Origin: Octopus bimaculoides
Taxonomy: Eukaryota
Length of the DNA: 61,171 nt
Assembly: GCF_001194135.2 (NCBI RefSeq)
Contig: NC_068985.1
Coordinates: 51,772,651 to 51,833,821 of the forward strand
Direction of reading: 5' to 3'
Part shown: one piece after another, positions 1,519-58,938 of the stretch
How positions within the stretch are numbered: position 1 is the stretch's first letter
Layout of the letters: each line of letters starts with the position of its first letter
Notes under the pieces: model-generated
Told to the model about the DNA's origin: nothing
The model's input: only the letters and a program-made list of their open reading frames with translations
Database searches by the model: none
Program-made: the position numbers and the translations under genes

Positions 1519-1593
1519 CAAATATACAAATCGTGACATGTTAAAACCTTTACCGGAGGTAGCGGTTTTAACATGTCACGATTTGTATATTTG
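1519..1593. repeat. Perfect 30-bp inverted repeat (hairpin, 15-nt loop)
   Basis: caaatatacaaatcgtgacatgttaaaacc (1519-1548) is the exact reverse complement of 1564-1593. Confidence 0.95.
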
Positions 1594-2146
1594 TATTAAG
1601 TGGACACTGATGAACGAACTGGAGGACTTGGACTACGCAGATGATCTCGCGTTACTGTCACATCGCCTGCAAGACAAGCAAGATAAGGTAGACCACCTGA
1701 GAGAAACTTCACGGCAAGTGGGCTTGAGGATCAGCCTGGAAAAGACAAAAGTGCTGCATATCAACAACAAGCAGGAAGAGCCAATCACAACTGAGGGGGC
1801 ACCTGTGGAGGACGTTAGTGAGTTTGTCTATCTTATCAGCAAATCAGGTGGATCAGACGAGGACATCACTGCAAGAAGCAAGAAGGCTTGGCAAGCCTTC
1901 GCTATTCTTCGGCCGGTATGGAAGTCCACTGCCATCTCAACTCGAACTAAACTCCGCTTAGTTCAAACGCAAAATCTGTGCTTTTGTATGGCTCTGAAAC
2001 ATGAGAGTCACCTGCAGCAACTATAAGAAGATCCAGACCTTCATCAACAAATGTCTTCGGCAGATCCTCCATCTGAAGTGATTCAACAGAGTGCCAAACA
2101 CTGATCTGTGGGAAAGGGCCAACCAGGGGCAAAAAGGATTGAGAGA
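1548..2146 (+). mobile_element. RTE-clade LINE insertion (RT fragment joined to the 3' terminus), 13-bp TSD
   Basis: IKWTLMNELEDLDYADDLALLSH... RT motif with frameshifts, ending GGC AAA AAG GAT TGA gagag. Flanked by gacatgttaaaac at 1535-1547 and 2147-2159. Confidence 0.85.
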
Positions 2147-4170: not shown

Positions 4171-5715
4171 GTAGAGATTATAACAACTGAAAACCACAGA
4201 AGAGGTGCATGTTGATATGATGTGGCATTTATTAAGGTGTGACAGTGTGGTAAGAAGATTGTTTCCCAACCACATGGTTGTGGGTTCATTCTCACTGTAT
4301 AGCACCTCAGGTAAGTGTCTTCTACTATAGCCCCAGCCAACCAAAGCCTTGTCAGTGGATTTGGTAGACATAAAATGAAAGAAGCCCATCATGTGTCTAC
4401 CTACCTACGTACCCATCTCTCTCTCTCTCTATCTATCTATCTATCCATCTATCTAACTGTCTGTTTATCTATTTATCTGTCTGTCTGTCCGTCTGTCTAC
4501 CTATCTAATATATCTATCTAATATGTGTGCTTGTGTTTTTCCTTCATCATTGCTTGACAACCAGTGTTGGTTTGTTTATGTCACTGATACTAAGCGTTTT
4601 GGCAACAGACACTGATAGAATAATTACCAGGTTTAAAAAAAAATAAATACTGGGGTTGATTTGTTTGATTGAACCATTCAAGGCTATGACCCAACATGAC
4701 CTCTGACAAATGACTGAAACAAGTAAAAGATAAAGAATAAATCTAATTTATACCAATTCCTTTAGAAGAACAGTTTGTTTACATGAAAATACCCCACAAA
4801 AAACATAAAAATAAACCTAATTAGTTCTTTTAGAAAAGAAATAATCTATTTGGGCTACATTTATTAATCATCTCCACTCCCTCTCCAGTGCATCTCACTA
4901 TACCACACCATATATGGATATCATTTACAAATTAAGTTCTGTAACGTATGAACCTATAGAAGCTAAGGGCATTGTTATCTATTTTGTATTAACTACAAGT
5001 ATATTTAAGAACTATGTTATCAACTTCACCTTTGTACGTTATTCTAAAAGTCAGAATTTGCTGTGATAATGAGATATTTGTCATCATATCATTTGTAAAA
5101 GTCTACTTGTGATATTCATCACCAATGGAGGTATTCAATATGAAATCCACTTTACATACTTTCTTAATTATGCATTACATTTAAGGTGGCGAGCTGGCAG
5201 AATCGTTAGCTCACAGGGCAAAATGCTTACCATCATTTCGTCTGCCTTTACATTCTGAGTTCAAATTCTGCTGAGCTTGACCTTGCCTTTCATCCTTTCA
5301 GGGTCAATAAAATAAATACCAGTTGAATGCTGGGATTGATGTAATTGATTGAGCCTCTCCTCCGATATTGCTGGCCTTGTGCCAAAGTTTGAAAACAATT
5401 ATGCATTACATTTGAACCATATTTGTTAACAGTGTAACTTAGTGGTTCAGCAAACAAGTCTGATATAATGAGTACCAGGCTTTAAAAAAAAACCTAAGTA
5501 CCAGGGTTGATTCATTTGACTAAAACCCTTCAAAGCTGTGCCCCAGCATGGCCACAGTCTAATGACTGAAACTAGTAAAAAAATAGAAGATAAAAGAGAA
5601 AATATTTATTCTGCTTGCTCTCTGCTCTGACAGGCAGAAATTTATCTTTAGTGGACCTCCAACTATCTGTTACATTGATAATTTACAGAATTTACTCTCA
5701 CCAAACATTGAAGAT

Positions 5716-6356
5716 CTGGTGATACCCAGGTGGCTTTATGGCAACGTCTGTGTGGGAAGAGGGTGCCTCCAATAGCAAGTTCGTTGACTGCACAGAAATC
5801 ATCTAGGAGTTCCCCGTTTTCATTCATTACTCCGAGGCCATTTCTTCCCATCACTCTCTCTCTTCCACTATTGTCACTTCCAACTTTGGCATTCATGTCT
5901 CCCATAAGAATCAACATGTCTCTTCTGGGAATCCTGTCTACCACTGTCTGTAACTGGGAGTAGAAGACGTCTTTTGTGTCTTCCTCCGCATTGTTTGTAG
6001 GTGCATAACACATAATGATGGACACTTGCTGGAACCTGGACTTAAACCTGGCCATGATGATGCGATCAGACACCGGTTCCCACTCCATCAGACTCCTTGC
6101 TGCTTCCTTCGGCAACAGCAGCGCTACCCCAGCTTCATGGTGGTCCTCTTCATTGTCTTTACCTGAGTAGAGAAGTATTTCACCTGTCACTAATTTGACC
6201 TTTCCAAAGGAGTTCCACCTTACTTCACATATGCTGAGTAGCGTGAGGTGATACTGGTGCATCTGCCTCACCGCTTGTGCGCACCAATGACTGCAAAAAG
6301 TGGAAAATAACAGTTGAGGCCTTATGCTCCACAAGAGGCAAAAAAGATTAAGAGAG
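5716..6356. mobile_element. 5'-inverted RTE LINE insertion: APE endonuclease fragment on minus (5716 to ~6283) plus 3' terminus on plus (~6286-6356), 13-bp TSD
   Basis: Minus strand: APE motifs ICEVRW, CYAPTN, MGDMNAKVG, HKATWVSPD. Plus strand: WKITVEALCSTRGKKD* gagag. TSD aaacattgaagat at 5703-5715 and 6357-6369. Confidence 0.85.
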
Positions 6357-7295
6357 AAACATTGAAGATGAATGCATAAATACAGTAAGCTGAGAGCAGA
6401 AATTGGCTTGGTATATTTATTAAATAAACAAACAGTACTTTGAAACGATTGTCCAAATATCTTGTACTTCTCAAACAATATATCATATAAAAGAAATGGA
6501 CTTTTTGGGAATAAGATGGTAAAATCTTTGTAAATGTCCATAGGTACAGGCATAGCTGTGTGATTAAAAAGTTTGCTTCCCAACCATTTAGTTTTAGGTT
6601 CAATCCCCCAATGTAGTACCTTGATTAAATGTCTTCTTCTATAGCCTTGGTTCAACCAAAGCCTTGTGAGTGGATTTAGTATATATTTCTATATGTATAA
6701 AAAGACACTCATGCTGGTATCACGTTAAAGGTATTGGTGCCACATGAAAAGCACTTGTGCTGGTACCATGTTAAAAGCACTGGTGTTGGTGCCACATAAA
6801 AAGCACCCAGTACACTCTGTGGAATGGTTGGCATTAGGAAGGCATCCAACTGTAGAAACCATGCCAGAACAGACAATGAAACCTGGTGCAGCCCCTGGCC
6901 TTACCAGATCTGGTCAAACAATCTGACCCATGCCAACATGAAAAAACGGACTTTAAATGATGATGATGATATATGTAGTTATTTATGTATGTATGTCTTT
7001 GTTCCCCACCCCGACTGCTTGACAACTTAGTGGTTCAGCAAAAAGACACTGATAAAATAAGTACTAGGCTTAAAAAAAAAAATTACTGGGGTCAATTTGT
7101 TCAACTAGACCCTTCAAGGCAGTGTCCCAGCATGGCTGCAGTCCAATGACTGAAACAAGTAAAAACATAAAAAGAAAATATATTTTAGTGGAAAAGCTTT
7201 TCCAAATTTGAACTTCTGCATATTTTTGAAAGTCAAATTCCTCCCATAAATTAACTCTGATTAGTATCATCATCAATTTTGCTATTATTGCTGAA

Positions 7296-8440
7296 GGCAG
7301 CGAGCTGGCAGAATCGTTAGTATACTGGGCTTAAAATGCTGAGCAGCATTTTGTCCATCTTTATGTTCTGAGTTCAAATTCCGCTAAGGTTGACTTTACC
7401 TTTCATCCTATCGGGGTCGATAAAATAAGTACCAGTCGAGTACTGGGGTTGATGTAATTGACTTAATCCCTCCCCCAAAATTTCAGGCCTTGTACCTTTA
7501 GTAGAAAGGATTATTATTATTATCATTGCTGAAGGTGGTGAGCTAGCAGAATTGTTAGCAGGCTGGACAAAATACTTTGTGGCATTTCATCCATTGCTAC
7601 ATTCTGAGTTCAAATTCTGTCGAGGTCAACTTTGCCTTTCATCCTTTTGGTGTCAATAAAATAAGTACCAGTGAAACACTGGGTTGATGCAATTGACTTG
7701 CTCCCTTTCCCCCAAATACAGGCCTTGTGCCTATAATAGAAAGAATTATTATTATTACTCACTGGCCCTCGTGCCGGTGGCACGGAAAAGCACCCACTAC
7801 ACTCTCAGAGTGGTTGGCGTTAGGAAGGGCATCCAGCTGTAGAAACTGTTAGATCAGATTGGAGCCTGGTGCAGCTTTCTGGCTTGCCAGTCTTCAGTCT
7901 AATCGTCTAACCCATGCTAGCATGGAAAGCAGACGTTAAACGATGATGATGATGATGATGATGATGTTGATGACTGCTATTGAGTGGAAGATGTCCAACT
8001 CACAGAATCATTAGCTCATTGGAAAAAATGCAGCTAAGCATTTTGTTTGTCTTTATGCTCGGAGTTCAAATGCCACAAAGGATGATTTTGAAGGTGAGTA
8101 AAATAAATACCAGTTGAACACTGGGGCTGATGTAATCAACTTAACCTCAAGTTAAAGTTCCTAAAGTTGCTGACTTTGTACCAAAATTTGAAGCCATTAT
8201 TATTCTCAAGTGGAAGGTAAACAAGCTGGCAGAATCATTAGCACTCCAGACAAAATTCTTGGTGGTATTTTTTCCAGCTTTACATTCTGAGTTCAAATTC
8301 TGCTGAGGTTGACTTTACCTTTCATCTGTTCAAGAGTCAGTAAAATAAAGTACCAGTCATGTACTGGGTTGATGTAATCAACATGTCTCCTTCCCCAAAA
8401 TTTCAAGCCTTCTGCCTATAACAGAAAGGGTTATTATTCT
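7296..8440 (+). mobile_element. Cluster of four head-to-tail tRNA-SINE family A copies ((ATT)n tail) with one (GAT)n-tailed element inside
   Basis: Repeated ggcrgcgagctggcagaatcgttagc...ctgagttcaaattc...tttcatcc...ctggggttgatgtaat units at about 7296, 7532, 7990 and 8215. The GAT-tailed element is at about 7761-7975. Confidence 0.75.
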
Positions 8441-20772: not shown

Positions 20773-21520
20773 AGTTACTCTTTTTCTTGTTTCAGTCATT
20801 TGACTGTGGCCATACTGGAGCACTGCCTTTATAGTCAAGCAAATCAACTGCAGAGTTTATTCTTTGTAAGCCTAGTACTTATTCTATCACTCTCTTTTGC
20901 CGAATCGCTAAGTTAGGGGGAAGCAAACAACCAGCATCGGTTGTCAAGTGATGCTGGGTGGGGGGACAAACAGACACACAAACATATACACAACACACAT
21001 ATATATATGTGGCCGTTGCTAGTACCGCCTGACTGGCCCTCGTAGGATTTTCGAGCGAGATCGTTGCCAGTGCCCCTGGACTGGCTCTTGTGCGGGTGGC
21101 ACATAAAATACACCATTTTGAGCGTGGCCGTTGCCAGTACTGCCTGACTGGCCTTCGTGCAGGCGACACGTAAAAGCACCCACTACACTCTCTGAGTGGT
21201 TGGCATTAGGAAGGGCATCCAGCTGTAGAAACTCTGCCAAACCAGATTGGAGCCTGGTGTAGCCATCTGGTTTCACCAATCCTCAGTCAAATCGTCCAAC
21301 CCATGCTAGCATGGAAAGCGGACGTTAAACGACGATGATGATGATGATGATATACATATATGATGGGCTTCTTCCAGTTTCCGACTACCAAATCCACTCA
21401 CTAGGCTTTGGTCGGCCCGAGGCTATAGTAGAAGACACTTGCCCAAGGTGCCACGCAGAGGGACTGAACCCGGGACCATGTGGTTGGTAAGCAAGCTACT
21501 TACCACACAGACACTCCTGC
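20773..21520 (-). mobile_element. tRNA-SINE family B hosting a young GAT-tailed RTE 3' end (~21010-21350, plus strand)
   Basis: The family B tail (20775-21000) and head (21355-21520) flank the insert at the internal microsatellite. Confidence 0.75.
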
Positions 21521-26415: not shown

Positions 26416-27307
26416 TCATGTGTGATAAATCTGTAAAACGCAACTAGAAAGTGTGCTGATGTATCGCTCCCACACAACAAGTAAGTTTGGATCAGTGCGG
26501 ATAAAGAGCTGCATCTCTTTGCAGCTCTCTCGGTAAGCTGTCAAGAAATATTGCATGTCTGCTTGTGTCCATCGAGACTGAAAACATGGTTCTATCATTT
26601 TCTCAACCAAGTCAACAAAAATGTCACGTGCGTCTTTGCTATGGTTCAAACCATAAGCAATGTTGATGATTGTTTTTGAAACATTCTTGAAATTCGCTTC
26701 CAGATCTTGAAAAGCTCTGTCGGACATTATCTTCAGCACTTTATCTAAGACAATACTTTTATGTTCATCGAGGTGTTCCTTTTCTGTAAGAATTTTTAGA
26801 TCTCGTAACTTCTGCAAAAAATCCCTGTCCAGATCGACATCCATGTCTTCATGGCCTGTGCATTCCACAGAACTATAAGACCATTTAGCAATCATTTGGT
26901 TTGCACAATGAACATAATCTTCAAATGTGAGAAATGCGAGTTTTTTCTTACCAGTTTCAAACCTATTGTTTGTGATGAAGACTATTGCAGCGTACTGTCG
27001 AGCAAGTTCTTTAGGTAGTAGGTAATAGGTACAGATGTTATCAACGAGGGTACCCATCATTTCTTCCACAGTCTTAAAAACACGCTTAATGTTATCAAAC
27101 TGACGCCGACAACTTCGTAATAAAACTTTGGTCTTCTCACTTACATCATCCAAATCTTTGCGATTGCGAGCTGAGAGCTTCTTGCCAAGAATTTCCCTTA
27201 CAACACGAGGATCGAACTGATAGTATTTTTCAATCAGCATACTCTGAGTATCAGGATCAATAAGATAGGTTTGTTGATCAGCGAGTTTGGGAGGGTTTTT
27301 CAGTAAT
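26416..27307 (-). CDS. FIBP: FIBP coding exon 2 (892 nt, to TGA stop)
   Basis: Acceptor tttcatttaatttAG|A at 27308. The join restores R-LLKNPPKL... and stays in frame through FIBP motifs VREILGKKLS, SCRRQFDN, NRFETGKKKL and DLVEKMIEPC. Total 1104 nt = 367 aa + stop. Confidence 0.95.
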
Positions 27308-37959: not shown

Positions 37960-38630
37960 AGACAGGATGGTCACGGTTGGAAGGCATTTGAACAAAATTC
38001 TACTCGACTTGGGGATTAAACACGTATATTTGTGTGAGTATGCAGCACACGCTTGATGTATACATATATAATTTAGCCACAAGTCAGTCCTAGGATCAAA
38101 AGGATTCTGGCTATTGCTATCCCGTCTTTTACCAAGCCAGTAAATATAGAGAGAAAATTGGCTGTTATTTCTAGCATAACGAGCGTCCACATAAAACATC
38201 TTCACGGAAAAGTAGTAATTATTTAACCCCAGGTCAAGCTTGATTTCAGTAGAGCTTATTATGATCAAAGGTAGGCCATGTTATTGTTGTTATAACCCCA
38301 GGTCAAACCTTTTTGAACAAACTTACGATCGAAAGCATTCCAGCCTTGACCACCTCGATCGTCCTTCTTTCGAGCACTGAGTATTTCCAACACCAAAATA
38401 TGTCCTTCCTTTTTTTTTCAAGAAGATAGGGGTCTGTAATTTAAAGGAGGCTTGCCTGCTATTTTTAGCAGGTCGCCAGCTCCACATAGAAGACCATGTG
38501 TATGTAAATAATGCATTGGTGCTATTAATGTTGGTAGTGGTGGTGGGAAAACAGAGAGAAAAGATGAGAACTTTTATATAGAACAAAATATTTTGCCGTA
38601 CATTATTATTATTATTATTAATTTGCTCAC

Positions 38631-38842
38631 CGTTCGAGACTTGCAAAAGTACGGTAATAGTCTCTGGTGTCGCTAAGAAGATCATCAAATGTTGCTTGGT
38701 ACTTTACAAGCACTCCGTTCTGTTGTAGATTGATGGCCGCTTCATGTGCTGTGTTACCGTTTAACCAATATTCATAGACTTCTGGATCAACGATTAGACG
38801 GCTGCCTACCATCACATCAACCTCACTGATAGTATTTGCCAT
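38631..38842 (-). CDS. FIBP: FIBP (acidic FGF intracellular binding protein), coding exon 1
   Basis: MANTISEVDVMVGSRLIVDPEVYEYWLNG...SDTRDYYRTFASLER resembles the FIBP N-terminus (human ...SDTMDHYRTFHMLER, recalled). The exon ends CG|GTGAGC (donor at 38630), phase 2, 212 nt. Confidence 0.95.
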
Positions 38843-40882
38843 TTCGAATTCACACTACGTAGTTAATGAAATAAAGAATTAAGGAATTTTGATTTTAAAG
38901 TCGTCCGAGAGTCGATGGAGGATTTCAACAGAGTCGATTTAAGGTTTGATCTTTGAGATGGATGTGTTCGTGTGCTTGCGTGTATGTATGTATGTATGTG
39001 TGTATTTATATTATATATTTTATATAGATGTGTGTGTGTGTGACACGACGGTCGAAGTGCGGCCCTTTAAAAAGTCGACTAGATATAAATAAAAAGTTGT
39101 TGCTATTCACAAATCGATAGTAATTAAACTAAAGCAAAAAAAAAAAAAATCAGGAATTGAATAACAAGGGGAGGGGAAAGAAATTAAAAACAAAACAACA
39201 AAAACGAGGGAAGCTCCGATTGGTGTTTACCCCACTAGTAAGACACCATAAACAGATACACACTCTTACATAAACAAACACACACACATATATATATACA
39301 TGTACATACACACATATAGACATATGCATACATACATGTGTGTGTGTGTGCGCGTGCGTATTTCAATTATCTATATCTATGTTATATTTTTACATTTATA
39401 GTCACTTATATATAAATATCTATAATTTACATGAGTATATATATTTCTGAATTAAAAAAAAAAAATTTCATTCCATAGTGAGGAAAAAAAAAAATGCGGA
39501 GAGGAAGTCTCGCAATGGTTAACATCTGAGCGAGAATTGATACGAGACCGGAAGTGAGTACTAGCGGTCCAAGACTTCCTCCATAGTATGTTGTGTTTAC
39601 GCGGCAAGTGTGGACAGTAGGATCCAGCTGAACTCTAGTCAGAAAAACCTTCCTAAGACTGCCTTCTCACGCAAACCTTCTCACCAATGGACGAAGTAAG
39701 ATTGCTTTTCATGCCTATGATCTTATTTCTCCTCTCTTTCCGCTGGCAATCGTGCTGATTTCCCGGCAAGAATTACCAACAGAAAAACAAATGACACGCG
39801 CACACTCATCATTGTAAAGAGACATACGCACGCATTTTATCAATTATCTCAGATCCATGTGTATTAATAATATTAATCATAGTGTTCATAACTAGATCCT
39901 TGTCATGCAATGTTGCATTCTTTCCACTTTTAAATATAAGAAGAAAAACTTAAATCTTGTCTCGCTATTCCCTCTCTCTCTCTCTGCAACCAATGACGTT
40001 CTTTAGCAGTATTTCCGTGCTAATTAAATCGTATTCGTTTTTAGTGTTGATAGACGGGGAAGAGAAAGTTTTAGTTGGTGCTAACGGCGAAATAAGGGGA
40101 AAATGTAACTAGGGAAATGATGGGGGAGATATATAAAACATTGTTGAAAAGCAATAACGCGATCAGTCAGATCAAATGAAAGTAATAAGGCACCTCCCGT
40201 ATTGAAGGTTGTGAAAATCCTTCCTACAATGTAATACTGTGTGGAATATCATTTTAGGTCGTTTGACCTTAGCTTTTTAACAGCAATAATGACTTCAAGC
40301 TTTTTACTTTAAATGTTTGGAAGTTTTAAAGCGAAATCGTGTTGAATTCCTTTTTGCTCTTTTCCCCGCAAAGCTTTTTATATGAATATAATAAACTGTT
40401 AACATTTTCTCTGTGAAATTCTGCCAGTTTTGCCTTGTTTGATCAAGAGTATTGTTGTGAAAGGACTTAATATCCGCTGAAACCGTTGAAATCCAGGATC
40501 CACTAACGTGTTGGAAAGAAAGACTAGTTTAAAAAAAGAAAAAAAAAAGAAAAGAAGGCGGAAATATTAAGAACCATCGTTTCTAAAGTAGAATATTGTA
40601 ACGATACTAAAACAATGTGCCTAAATGTTTGCTGAATATATATAAGACTAGCTAAGGAACGTTGTCTTGCATGAGATGCGGGAGGGCTCTACTATGTTTG
40701 TGTTGCAAGAACCAGCTGTGTTATGGGTGGGGCCACTTTTTAGTTGATATTTTGTGATATTTTCTTTTATAAGACGACACAATTAAGATAAACCAGAAAG
40801 AGAAATAGAGGGAGAAGTGTAGATACTATTTAAGAATAACAAACAGACAAAGCAAAACTTGTGGGAAGTGAAACGCATCGTC
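38843..40882. promoter_or_regulatory. Probable divergent promoter / 5'UTR region between FIBP and the pogo-PHD gene
   Basis: About 2 kb between divergent start codons. It is visibly CpG-richer and nearly free of TEs compared with the window, and has an ETS/GABP-type CCGGAAGTG at 39548-39556. Confidence 0.45.
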
Positions 40883-42607
40883 ATGCCCCGGTTATACAAA
40901 AGAAAAACTTTGAAAACTTTTTCTGAAGATGATCTGAGGGATGCTATAAATTGTTATAAAAACGGAGGTAAAGGTGTGACTTTTCGATCAGTTGCTCGGA
41001 AGTTTGGTGTACCAAGATCCACGTTAGAAAGATGGGTTAACAAACGCGAAAGTGCTCATTTTCGATCGGGCCGTGATACAGTCCTGTCAACGGAAATCGA
41101 AGAATATTTAATAGAGGCACTCTTATATCTGAGTGACCTCGGCTGGACGTTGGATAATGATCAACTGAAACTTATCGTGAAAAGTTATCTCGATTCCATG
41201 GATCTGCAAACGGTTTTCAAAAATAATATACCTGGAGACGACTGGCTTCACCATTTCATGAATCGCTGGAAAGACAGATTAACTTTGAGGAATCCAGATT
41301 ATGTAAATAATGCAAAAGTTAGAGAACTCACCGATGCAGTTATCGATGGCTTTTTTCAAATGTTGACTCAGTTGGTTAATCAACTGGGAATAACAGATTT
41401 ACCAGAACGATTTTACAATTTAAATGAAACGGGACTTAATCTCGACCCCAAAAAGAAAAAAGCTTTTCATCACCGTGGCATTAAAAACGGTCAGTATGTG
41501 ATGCCATCGGTGGGTAAGACACTTTACACAGTTTTATTTTGTGGCAATGCTGAGGGAGAGTACCTGCCACCCTACGTTATTTACAAAGGTAAATACTTGT
41601 ACGATACGTGGATGATGGGTGGCCCTGCTGGGACAACATACAACATTACAGAAACTGGTTGGATGGATGATTATGTTTTTGAAAACTGGGTGACACAGAC
41701 ATTTTTGCCTTTTGTAAAAAATAGGGAGAAACCAATAATTGTGTTCTTTGATGGCAATGGCTCACATATTACCTATCAAACAGCTTCAAAAGCCAGGAAT
41801 GCTGGGGTACATCTTGTTTGCTTACCTCCACATTCCTCAGGTGCTCTGCAACCTTTTGAGATTTCTGTGTATGGACCTGCCAAAAAAGTGTGGCATAGGA
41901 TTCTGCAGACATACTATAAGGAGTCTAGTCTGAAATCGGTCCAAAAGCTTGTTTTCCCTTCTCTTTTGAAACGCTTCTTTGACGAAGCATTCCTCGGTCG
42001 TAAAGATAATCTCATCAATGGATTTCGTAAGTCTGGTTTTTGTCCTTTGGATGCACAAAAGGGTAAGCTACTTTCTTCTAAAACCTTAGATAGATCGGAG
42101 AGAGATGCTGGTCCGTCTGGTCTCCAATCAAAAGAAGATACTGAAGCAGTAACAGGGGCTGCATCAAATTCTAAAACAAAAGCCAAAAAGTCTTCTCGGT
42201 CTTCTGTTTCCTCGGAAGAGAAAGCAAAGACTGCGAAGAAACCTTCAAAACGTCAGAAAAGAAGCTTACAAAGTGATGACAAGCCACCACCAAACAAAGA
42301 ACAAAAGAAAAATGTACAAGAAAATAACGAATCTGCACTAATTAGAGAAGCAATTCTCAAATTACAGCCTAAAATGAAGCGGAAGAATAAAAATAAATCT
42401 AAAAAGAAGTCACCAACGGCAAATAAAACTAATAATAACAACAAAGAAGAAGAAAAAATTGATGATAGTATTTGTTATATCTGCCTGGAAGAAGACCCCG
42501 AAACTGACCAGGAAGATATCAATTGGGTTGGTTGTGACAATTGCCCCAGATGGTTCCACGTGTCTTGTGTGGACGGCAGCGACAACCCCTGCAAACTTTG
42601 TTCCTGA
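40883..42607 (+). CDS. pogo/Tigger-family transposase-derived protein, 574 aa: HTH_psq/CENP-B-like HTH, DDE_1 domain, Lys-rich linker, C-terminal PHD finger
   Basis: Uninterrupted ORF, first ATG at 40883. N-terminal HTH (FRSVARKFGVPRSTLERW), pogo motifs FYNLNETG, FFDGNGSH and LPPHSSGALQPFE, and a C4HC3 finger CYIC..WVGCDNC..WFHVSC..CKLC. Confidence 0.9.
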   Translation: MPRLYKRKTLKTFSEDDLRDAINCYKNGGKGVTFRSVARKFGVPRSTLERWVNKRESAHFRSGRDTVLSTEIEEYLIEALLYLSDLGWTLDNDQLKLIVKSYLDSMDLQTVFKNNIPGDDWLHHFMNRWKDRLTLRNPDYVNNAKVRELTDAVIDGFFQMLTQLVNQLGITDLPERFYNLNETGLNLDPKKKKAFHHRGIKNGQYVMPSVGKTLYTVLFCGNAEGEYLPPYVIYKGKYLYDTWMMGGPAGTTYNITETGWMDDYVFENWVTQTFLPFVKNREKPIIVFFDGNGSHITYQTASKARNAGVHLVCLPPHSSGALQPFEISVYGPAKKVWHRILQTYYKESSLKSVQKLVFPSLLKRFFDEAFLGRKDNLINGFRKSGFCPLDAQKGKLLSSKTLDRSERDAGPSGLQSKEDTEAVTGAASNSKTKAKKSSRSSVSSEEKAKTAKKPSKRQKRSLQSDDKPPPNKEQKKNVQENNESALIREAILKLQPKMKRKNKNKSKKKSPTANKTNNNNKEEEKIDDSICYICLEEDPETDQEDINWVGCDNCPRWFHVSCVDGSDNPCKLCS

Positions 42608-44496
42608 AACTTCCCACGTGTAAAATGAAATCAAAAAAATGTTGACTTGTTCAAAAAAAAAAAAATATCCACTTTGCTCTACTGCCAGATATTTTCCTAC
42701 TTTTGTTTACAGATGTATAATTTCACNNNNNNNNNNNNNNNNNNNNNNNNNNNNNNNNNNNNNNNNNNNNNNNNNNNNNNNNNNNNNNNNNNNNNNNNNN
42801 NNNNNNNNNNNNNNNNNNNNNNNNNNNNNNNNNNNNNNNNNNNNNNNNNNNNNNNNNNNNNNNNNNNNNNNNNNNNNNNNNNNNNNNNNNNNNNNNNNNN
42901 NNNNNNNNNNNNNNNNNNNNNNNNNNNNNNNNNNNNNNNNNNNNNNNNNNNNNNNNNNNNNNTATATATATACAAATATATATATATGAATGAATATATA
43001 CATGCACACACACTATATATATAAATGTGTGTATCTGTATATATACAAACATACATAATTGCATACATATCCTCTTTTTTGAAACTCACTCTTCTCTGGA
43101 TTAAGAAAAAAAAAATCGAACAAATATATGAAGAATAAAAGGAAACATCTATTTGTAATTATTATTATTATTATTATTATTGCTGCTGATTCTACTATTT
43201 TGATTATGACAACTTATTATTATTATTATTAATGTTTAAATTCCTTTGAGGTCAACTTTGCCGTTCATCCTTTCCAGGGTTGATAAAATAAAGTACCGGT
43301 TGAATACTGGGGCCGAAATTAATCGATTGATCCTGTTGCCTCTTGAAAAATTACTGGCCTTGTACCAAAATTTTGAAACCTTTATTATAATTTTTGATAT
43401 TATTATTATTATTATTATGGCAGTGAGTTGGCAGAATTGTTAGCATGCTGGGTAGAATGCTTAGCGGCATTTTTGTCCATCTTTACATTCTGAGTTCAAC
43501 TTCTGCTGTGGTTGATTTTGCCTTTCGTCCTTTTAGGGTCGATAAAATAAGTACCGATTGAGCACTGTGGTTGATGTAATCGTCTTACTCTCTCCCCCAA
43601 AATTGTTGACATTTTACCAAAATTCAAGATAATCATCATCATCATTTTTATTATTATTATCATTATCATTATTATTTCTGGTTGTTATTATTTGTATTGT
43701 TATTTTTTTAAATATTACTTATTGAATTTCTGACATGTATTTTACAAAGGAAATGTTACTGTATTTGAACATCCTGTTTGAATATGTTGAAGTAATCTAG
43801 CTGTTGTCTGTGTTATGGTATTGTTAGGCCCATTAAAACTCCTTCCCTCGAGCTAGATGTTTTACACTTGATGGTTGATTACTTAGGTGTGTTTCTGATT
43901 ACCACCAGGTAGTCATAACACTGTTTCACTCAGGGTTTGATATTTCTACTGCCACTGGACTGTTTTAATTGCTCCAATAAGAAAGAAAGAATGAAAAAAG
44001 AAAAATCAATAAAACAGTTGTCAAATTCACCTAATATAGTTCACAGTTTCTGGATAATGTGATGATATTTATGGTGTATTATATAAGGTATTATGATAAT
44101 TGATGATAATGAGTATGACAAGGTTGAAGATGAAGTTGATATGTAATATGGTAATATGGACATCATCATTAGACTGACCTTTCATATATCTGCTGCCAAA
44201 TTATGGAAACTTTTTGCTACAACTGACAAATAGGCTTTCCTTTATAAATCTGTATCAGTTGATGAAGGAAGGTCTTGCTTTCAACAGTTGAAAGTATTGA
44301 GAAAGAGCCGAAGGTTTTATATACATGAAGCATTTTGAACAACTGAAGGAGCCTCTACAGGATTACTCGACATGCTAGGAGAAGGCCTTAATATACATAT
44401 ATGCAAAGCGTTTTGAACCACCAAAGGAGTCCCTACAGAATCACTTTACATGCTAGAAGTAGCAGTTAAATCTCCCATATATATATATATATATAT

Positions 44497-47275: not shown

Positions 47276-48129
47276 CAAGGTGGTATCAAAACGTTCCTGG
47301 ACTAGTTCTGTAGCATGCACACCAACAGATGGCAACACACAGTTGCATGCGCAGTGAGAGCTAGCAGTGCTCTTCCTGAGGCAGTGTGCCAAGTGATATC
47401 ACTGTGTTTACTTTGCAGGTTGTGAAATTTGTGTTTTTGTGATCACGTATGCTGCAGCCTGCAGTTTTGTCATGGACAGGAGCAAAGAGCAAACATGAAA
47501 TTTTGCGTTAACCTTGGGAACTCTGCCACAGAGACATTGAGCATGCTTTGGTAAACTTACGGCAATGAGGCAATGGGTCATATGCAATGGTTTGAGTAGC
47601 ACAGGTGCTTCAAAAGCAGAAGAACTTCCTTGAAAGACCTGCTGTGAGCGTCACCCCCTCGGAAATGTGGTATTGTGCATTGAGAATTCATCCCCCCTGG
47701 ATGTCAGTCAAGAGTTCTACTGCGACGTTTTGAAGCATTTGAGGGAGGACATTTGGTGAAAGTGACCAGATCTGTGGAGCGCCTCAGTCATGAGTTTCTT
47801 GCCAAAAAACAACATAGTATCACTTCTGCACCCACTCTATTTGCCAGATTTAGCACCTGTGGACTTCCATCTCTTCCACAAGATGAAAATGTGGCTGAAA
47901 GGTTGCCATTTTAACACTGTTGTCAAGATCCAGAGCGAATTGCAGAAGGTCCTGGACTCGCTTATGGAAAATGACTCCTGGGCCCGGATTCCAAAAGTGG
48001 CAGGATTGCTGGGACAGATGTATTGCTGCGGAAGGTGACTATTTCGAAGGAGATGATGTTAAAAGTAAGGTAAATAAGTTATCTTTCTATTAAACACAAC
48101 TAGTCCAGGAACTTTTTGATACCACCTCG
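47276..48129 (+). mobile_element. Internally deleted mariner element with both TIRs and TA TSDs
   Basis: TA|caaggtggtatcaaaacgttcctggactagtt ... aactagtccaggaactttttgataccacctcg|TA; remnants include HPLYLPDLAPVDFHLF. Confidence 0.85.
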
Positions 48130-52799: not shown

Positions 52800-54070
52800 T
52801 CAGCCAGAGTCCATATGGCCCTGGGAAGGTCCATATAAAATTTTGTTAAAATTTGTGTGCAATAAGTTAGTTATACTTCTACAATGCGGAGGCGCAATGG
52901 CCCAGTGGTTAGGGCAGCGGACTCGCAGTCATAGGATCGCGGTTTCGATTTCCAGACTGGGCGTTGTGAGTGTTTATTGAGAGTAAACACCTAAAGCTCC
53001 ATGAAGTTCCGGCAGGGGATGGTGGCGAACCCTGCTGTACTCTTTCACCACAACTTTCTCTCACTCTTACTTCCTGTTTCTGTTGTGCCTGTAATTCAAA
53101 GGGTCAGCCTTGTCACACTGTGTCACGCTGAATATCCCCGAGAACTATGTTAAGGGTACACGTGTCTGTGGAGTGCTCAGCCACTTGCATGTTAATTTCA
53201 TGAGCAGGCTGTTCCGTTGATCGGATCAATTGGAACCCTCGACGTCGTAAGTGACGGAGTGCCAACAACAACAATTTATAAAATGCACAAAATATTTCAA
53301 TTCTTTTTTATACAATTCTTAATAATATTTATTAGGAACAAAGAGCTAATATGAAATTCTGCGTTAAACTCAGGAATTCTGCTACAGAGACATTAAGCAT
53401 GCTTTGGCAAGTTTATGGTGATGCGGCAATGGATCGTCCACAATGTTTCAAGTGGTATGGGCACTTCAAAAGTGGAAGAATGTCCCTGGAAGACCTGCCA
53501 TGAGCGTTACCTCCAGAAATGCGGAATGGTGCATTGAGAATTTGTATCCCAGGGCCAGAACGTCAATCGAAAATTCTACTGCGATGTTTTGAAGTGTTTG
53601 AGGGGGTACATTTGGTGAAAGTGACTGAATCTGTAGAGTGTGAAGAATTGGATCCTTCATTAAGCTCTCCTCACTTGTGAGTTTCTTGCCAAAAACATGG
53701 TATTGCTTCCCTACCTGCCCTATTCACCAGATTTAGCACCTGTGGACTTCCATTTCTTCTCCAAGATGAAAATGCAGCTGGAAGGTTGCTGTTTTAACAC
53801 TGTTGTCAAACTCCAGAGTGAATCACCGAAGGTCCTCAACTCATGGAAAACGACTTCCAGGCCCGATTCCTAAAGTGGCAGGAACACTGGAACTGGTGTA
53901 TTGCTACACAAGGTGACTATTTCAAAGGAGATTATGTTAAAACTTAGATAAACAAGTTATTTTTTTTATTAAATGTAACTAGTCCAGGAACCTTTTGATA
54001 CCATGTCGTATTCAGTAGAGTAAAATAGGAATCAAAAGTGGTCTATGAGCAAAAAATGGTTGAGAACCGC
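52800..54070. mobile_element. hAT MITE split by SINE C (52888-53274) and a mariner remnant (~53350-54008)
   Basis: Outer segments match the 11279 MITE and end ggttgagaaccgc. The inner SINE C is full length, and the mariner 3' TIR ends ...gataccatgtcg|TA. Confidence 0.7.
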
Positions 54071-55410: not shown

Positions 55411-56406
55411 ACCTTTGCTGATGCCATGTAAAAGGTACCCAGTACACTAAAGGGGTTGGCATTGGGAGGGCATCCAACTGTAGAAATCATGCCAAAGCAG
55501 GCATTGATGCTTGGCACAGTCTTCTGCCTCACCAGCTCCTCTCAAACTGTTCAACATTTGCCAGCATGGAAAATGAACATTGAGTGGTGATGATAATATG
55601 GGGTAATAATTCCCCATACTGACTTTTGCATAACTTCTGTCTCATTTGCAAATTTTTGGCTAACCCCCATACTATGCTTGCATACACACACTGAATATGT
55701 AATATAGTGGAATTGAACCCAGAACTGTGTAATCGCCCAGCTGCAAAGCTGTCTTCCTAACCATATAACCAGTCTTGCTGTTCATGTTTCATGTTTCATG
55801 TTGAATTATGCAATATCTGGTTTTATGCAATATATGGCTGTTACATTGTTTGTCATCATCATTGTAACGCTTACTTTTCTCTGCTTTCATTGGTCGAACA
55901 AAATTTATTGTGGTGTATTGTCGAGAGCCGTGAAGGCATGTGGCTTAGTGGTTAGGGTGTTCAGCTCATGATCGTAAGGTCACGAGTTTGATTCCCGTTG
56001 GCGCATTGTGTCCTTGAGCAAGACACTTTATTTCATGTTGCTCCCGTCGACTCAGCTGGTGAAAAGGAGTAGTACCTGGATTTTAAAGGGCCAGTCTTGT
56101 CAGACTCGGTGTCATGCTGAATCTCCCTGAGAGCAATGTTAAGGGTACACATGCCTGTGGCGTGCTCTTGCATGTTAATTTCACGAGCTGGAACCCTCAT
56201 CATCATAACTAAGTGGCATATGTATGTGTATATATATATATCATCATCATCATCATCGTTTAACGTCCGCTTTCCATGCTAGCATGGGTTGGACGATTTG
56301 ACTGAGGACTGGTGCAACCGGATGGCTACACCAGGCTCCAATCTAATTTGGCAGAGTTTCTACAGCTGGATGCCCTTCCTAACGCCAACCACTCAGAGAG
56401 TATATG

Positions 56407-58365: not shown

Positions 58366-58688
58366 GGTCGCACATAAAATACACCATTTTGAGCGTGGCC
58401 ATTGCCAGTGCCCCTGGACTGGCTCTTGTGTGGGTGGCACATAAAATACACAATTTTGAGCATGGCCGTTGCCAGTACCGCCTGACTGGCCTTCGTGCGG
58501 GTGACACGTAAAAGCACCCACTACACTCTCTGAGTGGTTGGCGTTAGGAAGGGCATCCAGATGTAGAAACTCTGCCAAATCAGACTGGAGCCAGGTGTTG
58601 CTATCCGGTTTCACCAGTCCTCAGTCAAATCGTCCAACCCATGCTAGCATGGAAAGCGGACGTTAAACGATGATGATGATGATGATGA
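58366..58688 (+). mobile_element. Young GAT-tailed RTE 3'-UTR copy adjoining a gap
   Basis: Nearly the same sequence as 21080-21350. Confidence 0.7.
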
Positions 58689-58938
58689 TATATATATATA
58701 TATGTGTGTGTGAATTGACCCCAGTGCTTATATATATATATTTTAAAGCCTGGTACTTATTTTATTGGTCTCTTCTGCTGAACCACTAAGCTATGAAGTA
58801 AACACTCCAACACCAGTGGTGGGGAACATACACAGACACACACACACACACAAACAAACAGACACACAAGAAGCTTTCAGTTTCCATCGACCAAATCTAC
58901 TCACAAGGTTATAGTAGAAGACACTTGCCCAAGGTGTC

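Follow-up and report, generated by a model that had tools for sequence, protein, structure and literature searches.

The window examined here is a stretch of 61,171 nt from Octopus bimaculoides chromosome CM046605.1 (GCA_001194135.2). On its forward strand lies an intronless coding sequence derived from a pogo transposase (40883-42607; 574 aa plus stop), which encodes exactly the protein catalogued as LOC106877420 / XP_014781803. This open reading frame (ORF) runs through 574 codons without a stop and is by far the longest in the window. Its product starts with a helix-turn-helix (HTH) motif of the HTH_psq type (residues 14-57, 40922-41053; assigned by Pfam, and helix region H15-52 of the structural model), followed by a second helical, DNA-binding-like module (residues ~70-128, ending at 41266; H70-128 of the model). 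The DDE_1 or RNase H-like core occupies residues ~151-396 (41333-42070), as seen with Pfam, in the model and with Foldseek. A linker rich in Lys and Ser (residues ~397-530, 42071-42472) is predicted to be disordered and contains basic runs resembling nuclear localization signals. The protein ends with a C4HC3 PHD finger (residues 531-574, 42473-42604), which includes W548 and W558 and is indicated by profile, sequence and fold matches.

The DDE_1 domain was recognized in a Pfam scan of the 574-aa protein with an E-value of 2.1e-22, above the curated cut-off, and HTH_psq with an E-value of 9.4e-6 (25.7 bits, cut-off 20.4). In the AlphaFold2 model (alignment A1) the HTH modules and the core are confident, with a predicted local distance difference test (pLDDT) score of 80-96, and a disordered stretch with a pLDDT of ~30 is predicted at residues 397-546. 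The best matches of the modelled core in the PDB are the Mos1 mariner transposase (Foldseek E-value 3.5e-9) and the transposase domain of SETMAR.

Three codons of the core define the catalytic site. AAT (41423-41425) encodes N181 where the first catalytic Asp is expected, GAT (41750-41752) encodes the second catalytic Asp, D290, which is kept, and GAG (41858-41860) encodes E326 where the third Asp is expected. Measured against the D-D-D triad of pogo transposases, a superfamily of the IS630-Tc1-mariner group, the protein departs from it (N181-D290-E326) and keeps the DD35D spacing. A sequence-only reading of this locus had proposed a domesticated pogo transposase, and the features that it listed were all recovered: a 574-aa ORF with zero stops; the motifs NLNETG (N181), FFDGNGSH (D290, with N292) and QPFE (E326), each exactly at the codons given above; 35 residues between D290 and E326; and a PHD finger with its full set of ligands. 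It had also described a missing pair of terminal inverted repeats (TIRs). No TIR pair was found around the ORF, where the inverted matches are low-complexity TA/TG only. The TIR motif of a related transposable element (TE), the L005 copy described below, occurs nowhere in the window, and no second copy of the ORF was found within its 61 kb.

The altered site is shared by all octopod sequences. N-D-E is encoded by identical codons (AAT, GAT, GAG) in 5/5 of them, and the His of the DGHxSH motif is replaced by N292 in the same 5/5; the conservation of N181 and E326, which the sequence-only reading had asked about, is thus seen down to the codon. The residue before E326 is more variable: codon 325 (41855-41857) encodes Phe in O. 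bimaculoides only (QPFE), and Leu (QPLE) in O. sinensis, in two species or alleles assembled from Logan, in Argonauta and in 95% of the TE relatives.

The source family is very large, with 15,816 representatives found at E<=1e-3 in an exhaustive HMMER search. The top match outside the octopods has 42% identity. D-D-D is found in 148 of the 172 closest sequences, and N-D-E only in the four octopod proteins of that set. Position 181 is D in 96% and position 326 is D in 98% of the TE relatives. Octopods retain 50 of the 58 positions with a conservation of 80% or more among these relatives; among the eight that have changed are the two replaced catalytic Asp residues and the positions next to them. 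Judged from these residues, the octopod protein has kept its fold and has been altered specifically at its active site.

In the C-terminal tail the zinc ligands follow the pattern C-x2-C-x17-C-x2-C-x4-H-x2-C-x7-C-x2-C. The eight ligands (C531, C534, C552, C555, H560, C563, C571 and C574) are invariant among the orthologs and the nearest TE relatives. Modelled alone, the tail reached a pLDDT of 74.6, and its top 50 Foldseek matches in the PDB are nearly all PHD fingers, the exceptions being two related entries of FYVE zinc fingers. The best of them is the AL3 PHD finger bound to H3K4me2 (root-mean-square deviation 1.8 A over 37 columns, probability 1.0, E-value 0.03), and most of the matched folds are readers of H3K4me2/3, at weak E-values. 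By sequence (phmmer), the best PDB matches of the tail are ceKDM7A (E-value 7e-5), Spp1, the third PHD finger of KDM5B and BPTF; ALFIN-like and TAF3, also H3K4me2/3-reading PHD fingers, are among the best sequence and fold matches. In the phmmer alignments W548 (NWVGCD) and W558 (RWFH) align with Trp/Tyr residues of ceKDM7A, KDM5B PHD3 and BPTF, which we take, from the published structures, to be methyl-lysine cage residues. Binding of H3K4me by the octopod PHD finger would be consistent with these matches.

The PHD finger is not peculiar to octopods. The nearest D-D-D relatives, among them P0004 (a Tara Oceans contig), P0008 and the L005 copy (ENA assembly ERZ25066843), share the tail motif ICYxC..EDPP..W(V/I/L)xC(D/E)xCxRW(F/Y)H..C..C. 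Because these relatives carry the same tail, the PHD finger was inherited from the ancestral transposon and not fused later within the host. The caution voiced in the sequence-only reading, that pogo ORFs with a PHD tail also exist as TEs, was therefore correct. The L005 element (4958-8309 of its contig) is a PHD-tailed D-D-D pogo with 30-nt TIRs (4958-4987 and 8280-8309), TA on both flanks and at least three subterminal GGGTAATTTGGGACA repeats per end. Its PHD region is frameshifted, and a palindromic insertion with 59-nt arms (5684-6032) separates the HTH from the DDE part. From these features the copy is read as a bona fide, decaying transposon.

Orthologs of the octopod gene are known from O. 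sinensis (XP_029636049.1, LOC115211605; 98.6% identity), from runs SRR11869390 and SRR11869384 (four Logan-assembled sequences; 96-97%) and from Argonauta hians (GAB1602359.1; 82-89%, depending on the alignment). The protein collection contains one locus per genome and no protein between 45% and 82% identity. Two Logan contigs, L002 and L007, were considered as transcripts and rejected; each is collinear with genomic DNA, promoter and intron included, and terminates in a TA microsatellite.

Synteny with FIBP had been suggested in the sequence-only reading as a check in other octopods, and intact orthologs were found beside FIBP in both O. sinensis and A. hians. The anchor is the first coding exon of FIBP (38630-38842, reverse strand), which lies head-to-head with an Aldolase_II gene; the large second exon of FIBP is at 26419-27300 on the same reverse strand. 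In O. bimaculoides, O. sinensis and A. hians the ORF adjoins FIBP at a spacing of ~2.04 kb; in Argonauta the distance to the FIBP start is ~2.05 kb, the gene again lying on the strand opposite to FIBP. Nucleotide similarity between Octopus and Argonauta extends over the FIBP exons and the block with the shared promoter and 5' exon (39532-40381), and then resumes at the ORF. There it begins ~22 bp before the ATG and stops 4 bp past the stop codon; the sequence downstream of the ORF is unrelated between the two genera.

Selection and age were assessed from synonymous (dS) and nonsynonymous (dN) divergence, calculated with a Nei-Gojobori script. Between O. bimaculoides and Argonauta the whole ORF has a dS of 1.02 and a dN of 0.059, and the dN/dS of 0.058, together with 0.09-0.19 within Octopus, answers the question about purifying selection that the sequence-only reading had raised. 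Synonymous changes are overwhelmingly in excess (Fisher p = 9e-97). Against Argonauta the ratio is 0.015 in the HTH region, 0.032 in the DDE core, 0.023 in the PHD finger and 0.13 in the linker, where it ranges from 0.13 to 0.37 over the species comparisons and where the indels between species fall. The adjacent FIBP exon has a dS of 1.06 for the same pair of species, and from the agreement of 1.02 with 1.06 it follows that ORF and FIBP have diverged together by vertical descent. A recent or independent insertion, or a horizontal transfer, was rejected, because ORF and FIBP have equal dS and the orthologs have the inactivating codons in common. As the argonaut genome papers state no divergence time, dS was taken as the measure of divergence. 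By these comparisons the insertion is older than the split between Octopus and Argonauta, which sets the lower bound on its age.

A probable upper bound comes from outside the octopods. In a control search FIBP was 98% identical between Octopus and Argonauta, 91-93% identical in a second group of cephalopods and 66% identical in a chiton. A named decapodiform FIBP seems to be missing from the collection, so the lack of a decapodiform match to the ORF is uninformative. In an outgroup contig of the second cephalopod group (ENA ERZ21867824 ctg118736l), the first exon of FIBP has nothing resembling the ORF within 10 kb upstream. Its FIBP is 91-93% identical to the octopod protein and has the same two-exon structure, with an intron of 6.3 kb, and its synonymous divergence from the octopods is saturated. 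The contig probably comes from a decapodiform or from another coleoid that is not incirrate. The contig without the ORF suggests an insertion confined to the octopod lineage, and the absence beside its FIBP gives a probable upper bound on the age.

The same data bear on whether the ORF could be a pogo copy that is still mobile, or was until recently, with purifying selection reflecting selection for transposition among copies. Such a copy would be expected to have the full transposase architecture that is seen here, and it could be drawn from the very large source family, whose close relatives in this comparison are true TEs with TIRs. Occupation of the same locus in three genomes, the match of its dS to that of the neighbouring FIBP, the absence of TIRs, the lack of any further copy above 45% identity for these genomes in the protein collection and the replacement of two catalytic residues in all orthologs nevertheless leave this explanation exceedingly improbable.

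A further alternative is that the gene was domesticated and has retained nuclease or recombinase activity at its N-D-E site, the product being a DNA-processing enzyme and not a passive binder. The low dN/dS of the DDE core would fit this, residues ~160-400 being almost invariant between Octopus and Argonauta, as would the kept D290 and the still acidic E326 at the correct spacing of 35 residues. The transposase domain of SETMAR, which keeps partial cleavage activity with a DDN triad, is moreover among the fold matches. On the other side, an Asp-to-Asn change at the first metal ligand abolishes catalysis in DDE/DDD enzymes, and mariner-type DD34D enzymes are inactivated when the third residue changes from Asp to Glu. 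The His of DGHxSH has also been replaced, and the changes at conserved positions cluster in the active site. An active enzyme is regarded as very unlikely.

The reading preferred here is that the octopod ORF is very probably not a live transposon but a host gene that goes back to one inserted DD35D pogo element with a PHD tail. Domestication is supported by the synteny, the equal dS, the strong purifying selection, the loss of TIRs and the substitutions shared in the active site. Several points weigh against it. The PHD finger (PF00628) scored 19.8 bits (E-value 8e-4), under the Pfam gathering threshold of 24, and the Foldseek E-values of the tail are weak (0.03-0.3). Genome-wide copy number is deduced from look-ups in the protein collection. 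Glu at the third position serves many DDE transposases, and a loss of catalysis in the octopod protein would be a prediction drawn from the behaviour of other DDE/DDD enzymes. Finally, the ORF lies inside an intron of another gene, so its transcription unit may be its own or part of that gene's.

That other gene encodes an Aldolase_II-domain protein (233 aa, APIP-like). Its conserved 5' exon and promoter lie at 39540-39696 on the forward strand, with the donor from 39697; a coding exon of 10 nt starts at the ATG at 39687 and ends at a GTAAGA donor, and the promoter block contains an ETS-like CCGGAAGTG at 39548. Conservation of this block is high between the two genera, Octopus and Argonauta; where O. 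bimaculoides has the ATG at 39687, Argonauta has TTG, and the GTAAGA donor is kept. The Aldolase_II gene extends past the ORF on the same strand, which places the ORF in its first intron, and the arrangement in O. sinensis is identical. No downstream Aldolase_II exons were found when the Argonauta and Octopus flanks were compared. A conserved non-coding block (40690-40765, forward strand, from the alignment with Argonauta) lies 120-190 bp 5' of the ATG of the ORF and includes GTGTTATGGGTGGGGCCAC at 40718. It is kept in Argonauta amid an otherwise diverged intron and resembles a possible promoter or GC/CACCC-box element.

From its conservation this block may be the own promoter or regulatory element of the pogo-derived gene. 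Alternatively, transcripts could begin at the conserved APIP 5' exon and use the donor at 39697. The ORF would then serve the APIP-like unit as a cassette or alternative terminal exon, driven from the bidirectional promoter shared by FIBP and APIP. The ORF does lie 1.19 kb downstream of the conserved first exon and donor of that gene, on the same strand, and O. bimaculoides has a pyrimidine tract with an AG ~110 bp before the ATG. This AG was rejected as a splice acceptor for lack of conservation in Argonauta. The separate conserved block 5' of the ATG could be a promoter of the gene itself, and a separate single-exon gene is given both in the NCBI model (O. sinensis) and in the deposited annotation of Argonauta. 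The exon alternative is rated as rather unlikely; it bears on the mode of transcription only and leaves domestication unaffected.

Outside the gene and its neighbours, the window contains eight assembly gaps. One of them (42727-42962, 236 N) starts 119 bp past the stop codon of the ORF; the corresponding region is a TG/TA microsatellite in O. sinensis and in Logan contigs. The other TEs of the window had been described in the sequence-only reading as decayed, and LINE fragments, a reverse transcriptase piece and two mariner remnants were recovered. The two mariner copies (~47480-47900 and 53336-53790, forward strand) carry stops and frameshifts, and one of them matches a Mos1-type HTH_48 with an E-value of 2.8e-11. 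The fragments of long interspersed nuclear elements (LINEs) comprise an ORF resembling the endonuclease/exonuclease/phosphatase family (5663-6655, reverse strand) and an RVT_1/DUF6451 piece (1538-2026, forward strand), with scores below or near the Pfam thresholds. An interspersed repeat of ~150-190 bp has many copies in the window (21190-21360, 56240-56400, 58530-58690 and others). It also occurs in the Argonauta locus (contig L001, 1461-1611 and 15597-15772) at ~70% identity, which suggests an old octopod family resembling short interspersed nuclear elements.

Under domestication, the history of the gene would have begun with a single PHD-tailed DD35D pogo element that inserted ~2 kb from the FIBP start, in intron 1 of the Aldolase_II (APIP-like) gene, before Octopus and Argonauta separated. 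Afterwards the TIRs would have been lost together with two of the three catalytic carboxylates (D181N and D326E), and H292N would have arisen in DGHxSH. Strong purifying selection has since maintained the paired HTH region, the PHD finger and the RNase H-like fold as a whole. The product would be nuclear and would have lost the ability to cut DNA. Its HTH modules may bind specific DNA and its PHD finger may dock on histone H3 tails, probably at H3K4me2/3, while the conserved but presumably dead core could be used for DNA contact or oligomerization. A role as a chromatin-bound adaptor in transcription or TE silencing, like CENP-B/Abp1, POGK or POGZ, would be in line with this architecture.

The source of the insertion invites a more tentative idea. 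The word PHD is absent from two large surveys of pogo elements (PMC7386202, PMC7325037), and a search of the literature found no paper on PHD-tailed pogo elements. PHD-tailed DD35D pogo elements might form a lineage that these surveys do not describe and whose transposase reads H3K4me2/3 and so targets active promoters, with the octopod gene as its co-opted fossil; this is a speculative proposal to which only low credence is given. If it were true, the octopod gene would have landed 1.2 kb into the conserved region of the bidirectional FIBP/APIP promoter before its co-option, and its disabled catalytic site and kept fold would have yielded an octopod-specific factor that links a specific DNA motif (perhaps relic TIRs or miniature inverted-repeat elements of its own family) to active chromatin.

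The protein has been catalogued before. XP_014781803 / LOC106877420 appears in a supplementary table of Mukherjee and Moroz 2023 (PMC10027918) as 'HTH-PSQ PHD', among 12 putative TE-derived HTH-Psq factors; that study gives a family-wide Ka/Ks and calls the genes lineage-specific without one-to-one homologs. Catalytic residues and synteny are not mentioned there, nor does the study include an analysis of orthologs, and no mention of LOC115211605 was found in the literature. No new principle is involved here; the protein has been listed since 2023 as a putative TE-derived transcription factor. What appears modestly novel, from the sequence comparisons, is the inheritance of a histone-reader module from a PHD-tailed transposon lineage. 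Pogo domestications have so far been described mostly from vertebrates, yeasts and insects, and the octopod gene is a well-documented further case from an invertebrate. The arrival of the chromatin-reader module with the transposon points to a PHD-bearing pogo lineage in which histone marks may serve targeting, and for cephalopod biology the gene is a candidate lineage-specific chromatin or transcription factor.

Among known systems, the D-D-D pogo elements with a PHD tail, which include P0004, P0008 and L005/P0005 and come from public assemblies and metagenomes, are 37-45% identical to the octopod protein over its full length and share with it FYNLxETGL, DGxGSH, LQPLx and the tail motif; they differ in having kept D-D-D. 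SETMAR/Metnase likewise joins a core of the Tc1/mariner group with an altered triad (DDN) to a histone-directed module, and its structure matches the octopod model. It belongs to the mariner family, however, and its SET domain is a writer gained by exon capture, whereas the octopod module is a reader inherited from the TE. CENP-B, Abp1/Cbh1/Cbh2 and TIGD/JRK (pogoR-/Tigger-derived) resemble the octopod protein as pogo-derived, sequence-specific chromatin DNA binders with degenerate catalytic sites, and from this likeness, which implies no orthology, the functional model of DNA binding plus recruitment of chromatin factors is taken. By description they come from other pogo families (DD29-36D) and lack a PHD finger, and CENP-B has a dimerization tail.

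The closest functional parallels are POGK and POGZ, vertebrate genes that descend from Passer-type DD35D pogo transposases and in which, as in the octopods, a whole pogo transposase (HTH plus DDE_1) with DD35D spacing has become a stationary host gene tied to a chromatin or repression module. DD35D characterizes the Passer and Fot/Fot-like families (Gao et al. 2020, PMC7386202); the same study gives DN35D for POGK and DD35D for POGZ, and their Ka/Ks of 0.06-0.07 is as low as the 0.058 of the octopod gene. POGK, like the octopod gene with its N-D-E, has a broken triad. The octopod DNA-binding motif is HTH_psq and not BrkDBD/HTH_Tnp_Tc5, and its C-terminal PHD finger came with the transposon, whereas the modules of POGK and POGZ are N-terminal and of host origin (KRAB or a zinc-finger array). 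None of the 23 proteins listed in a word-index search is a named vertebrate gene, the matches of the exhaustive search being nameless, and the nearest non-octopod relatives are TE-like D-D-D proteins of at most 45% identity. The octopod domestication would accordingly be an event independent of those that gave rise to the vertebrate POGK, POGZ, TIGD and CENP-B genes.

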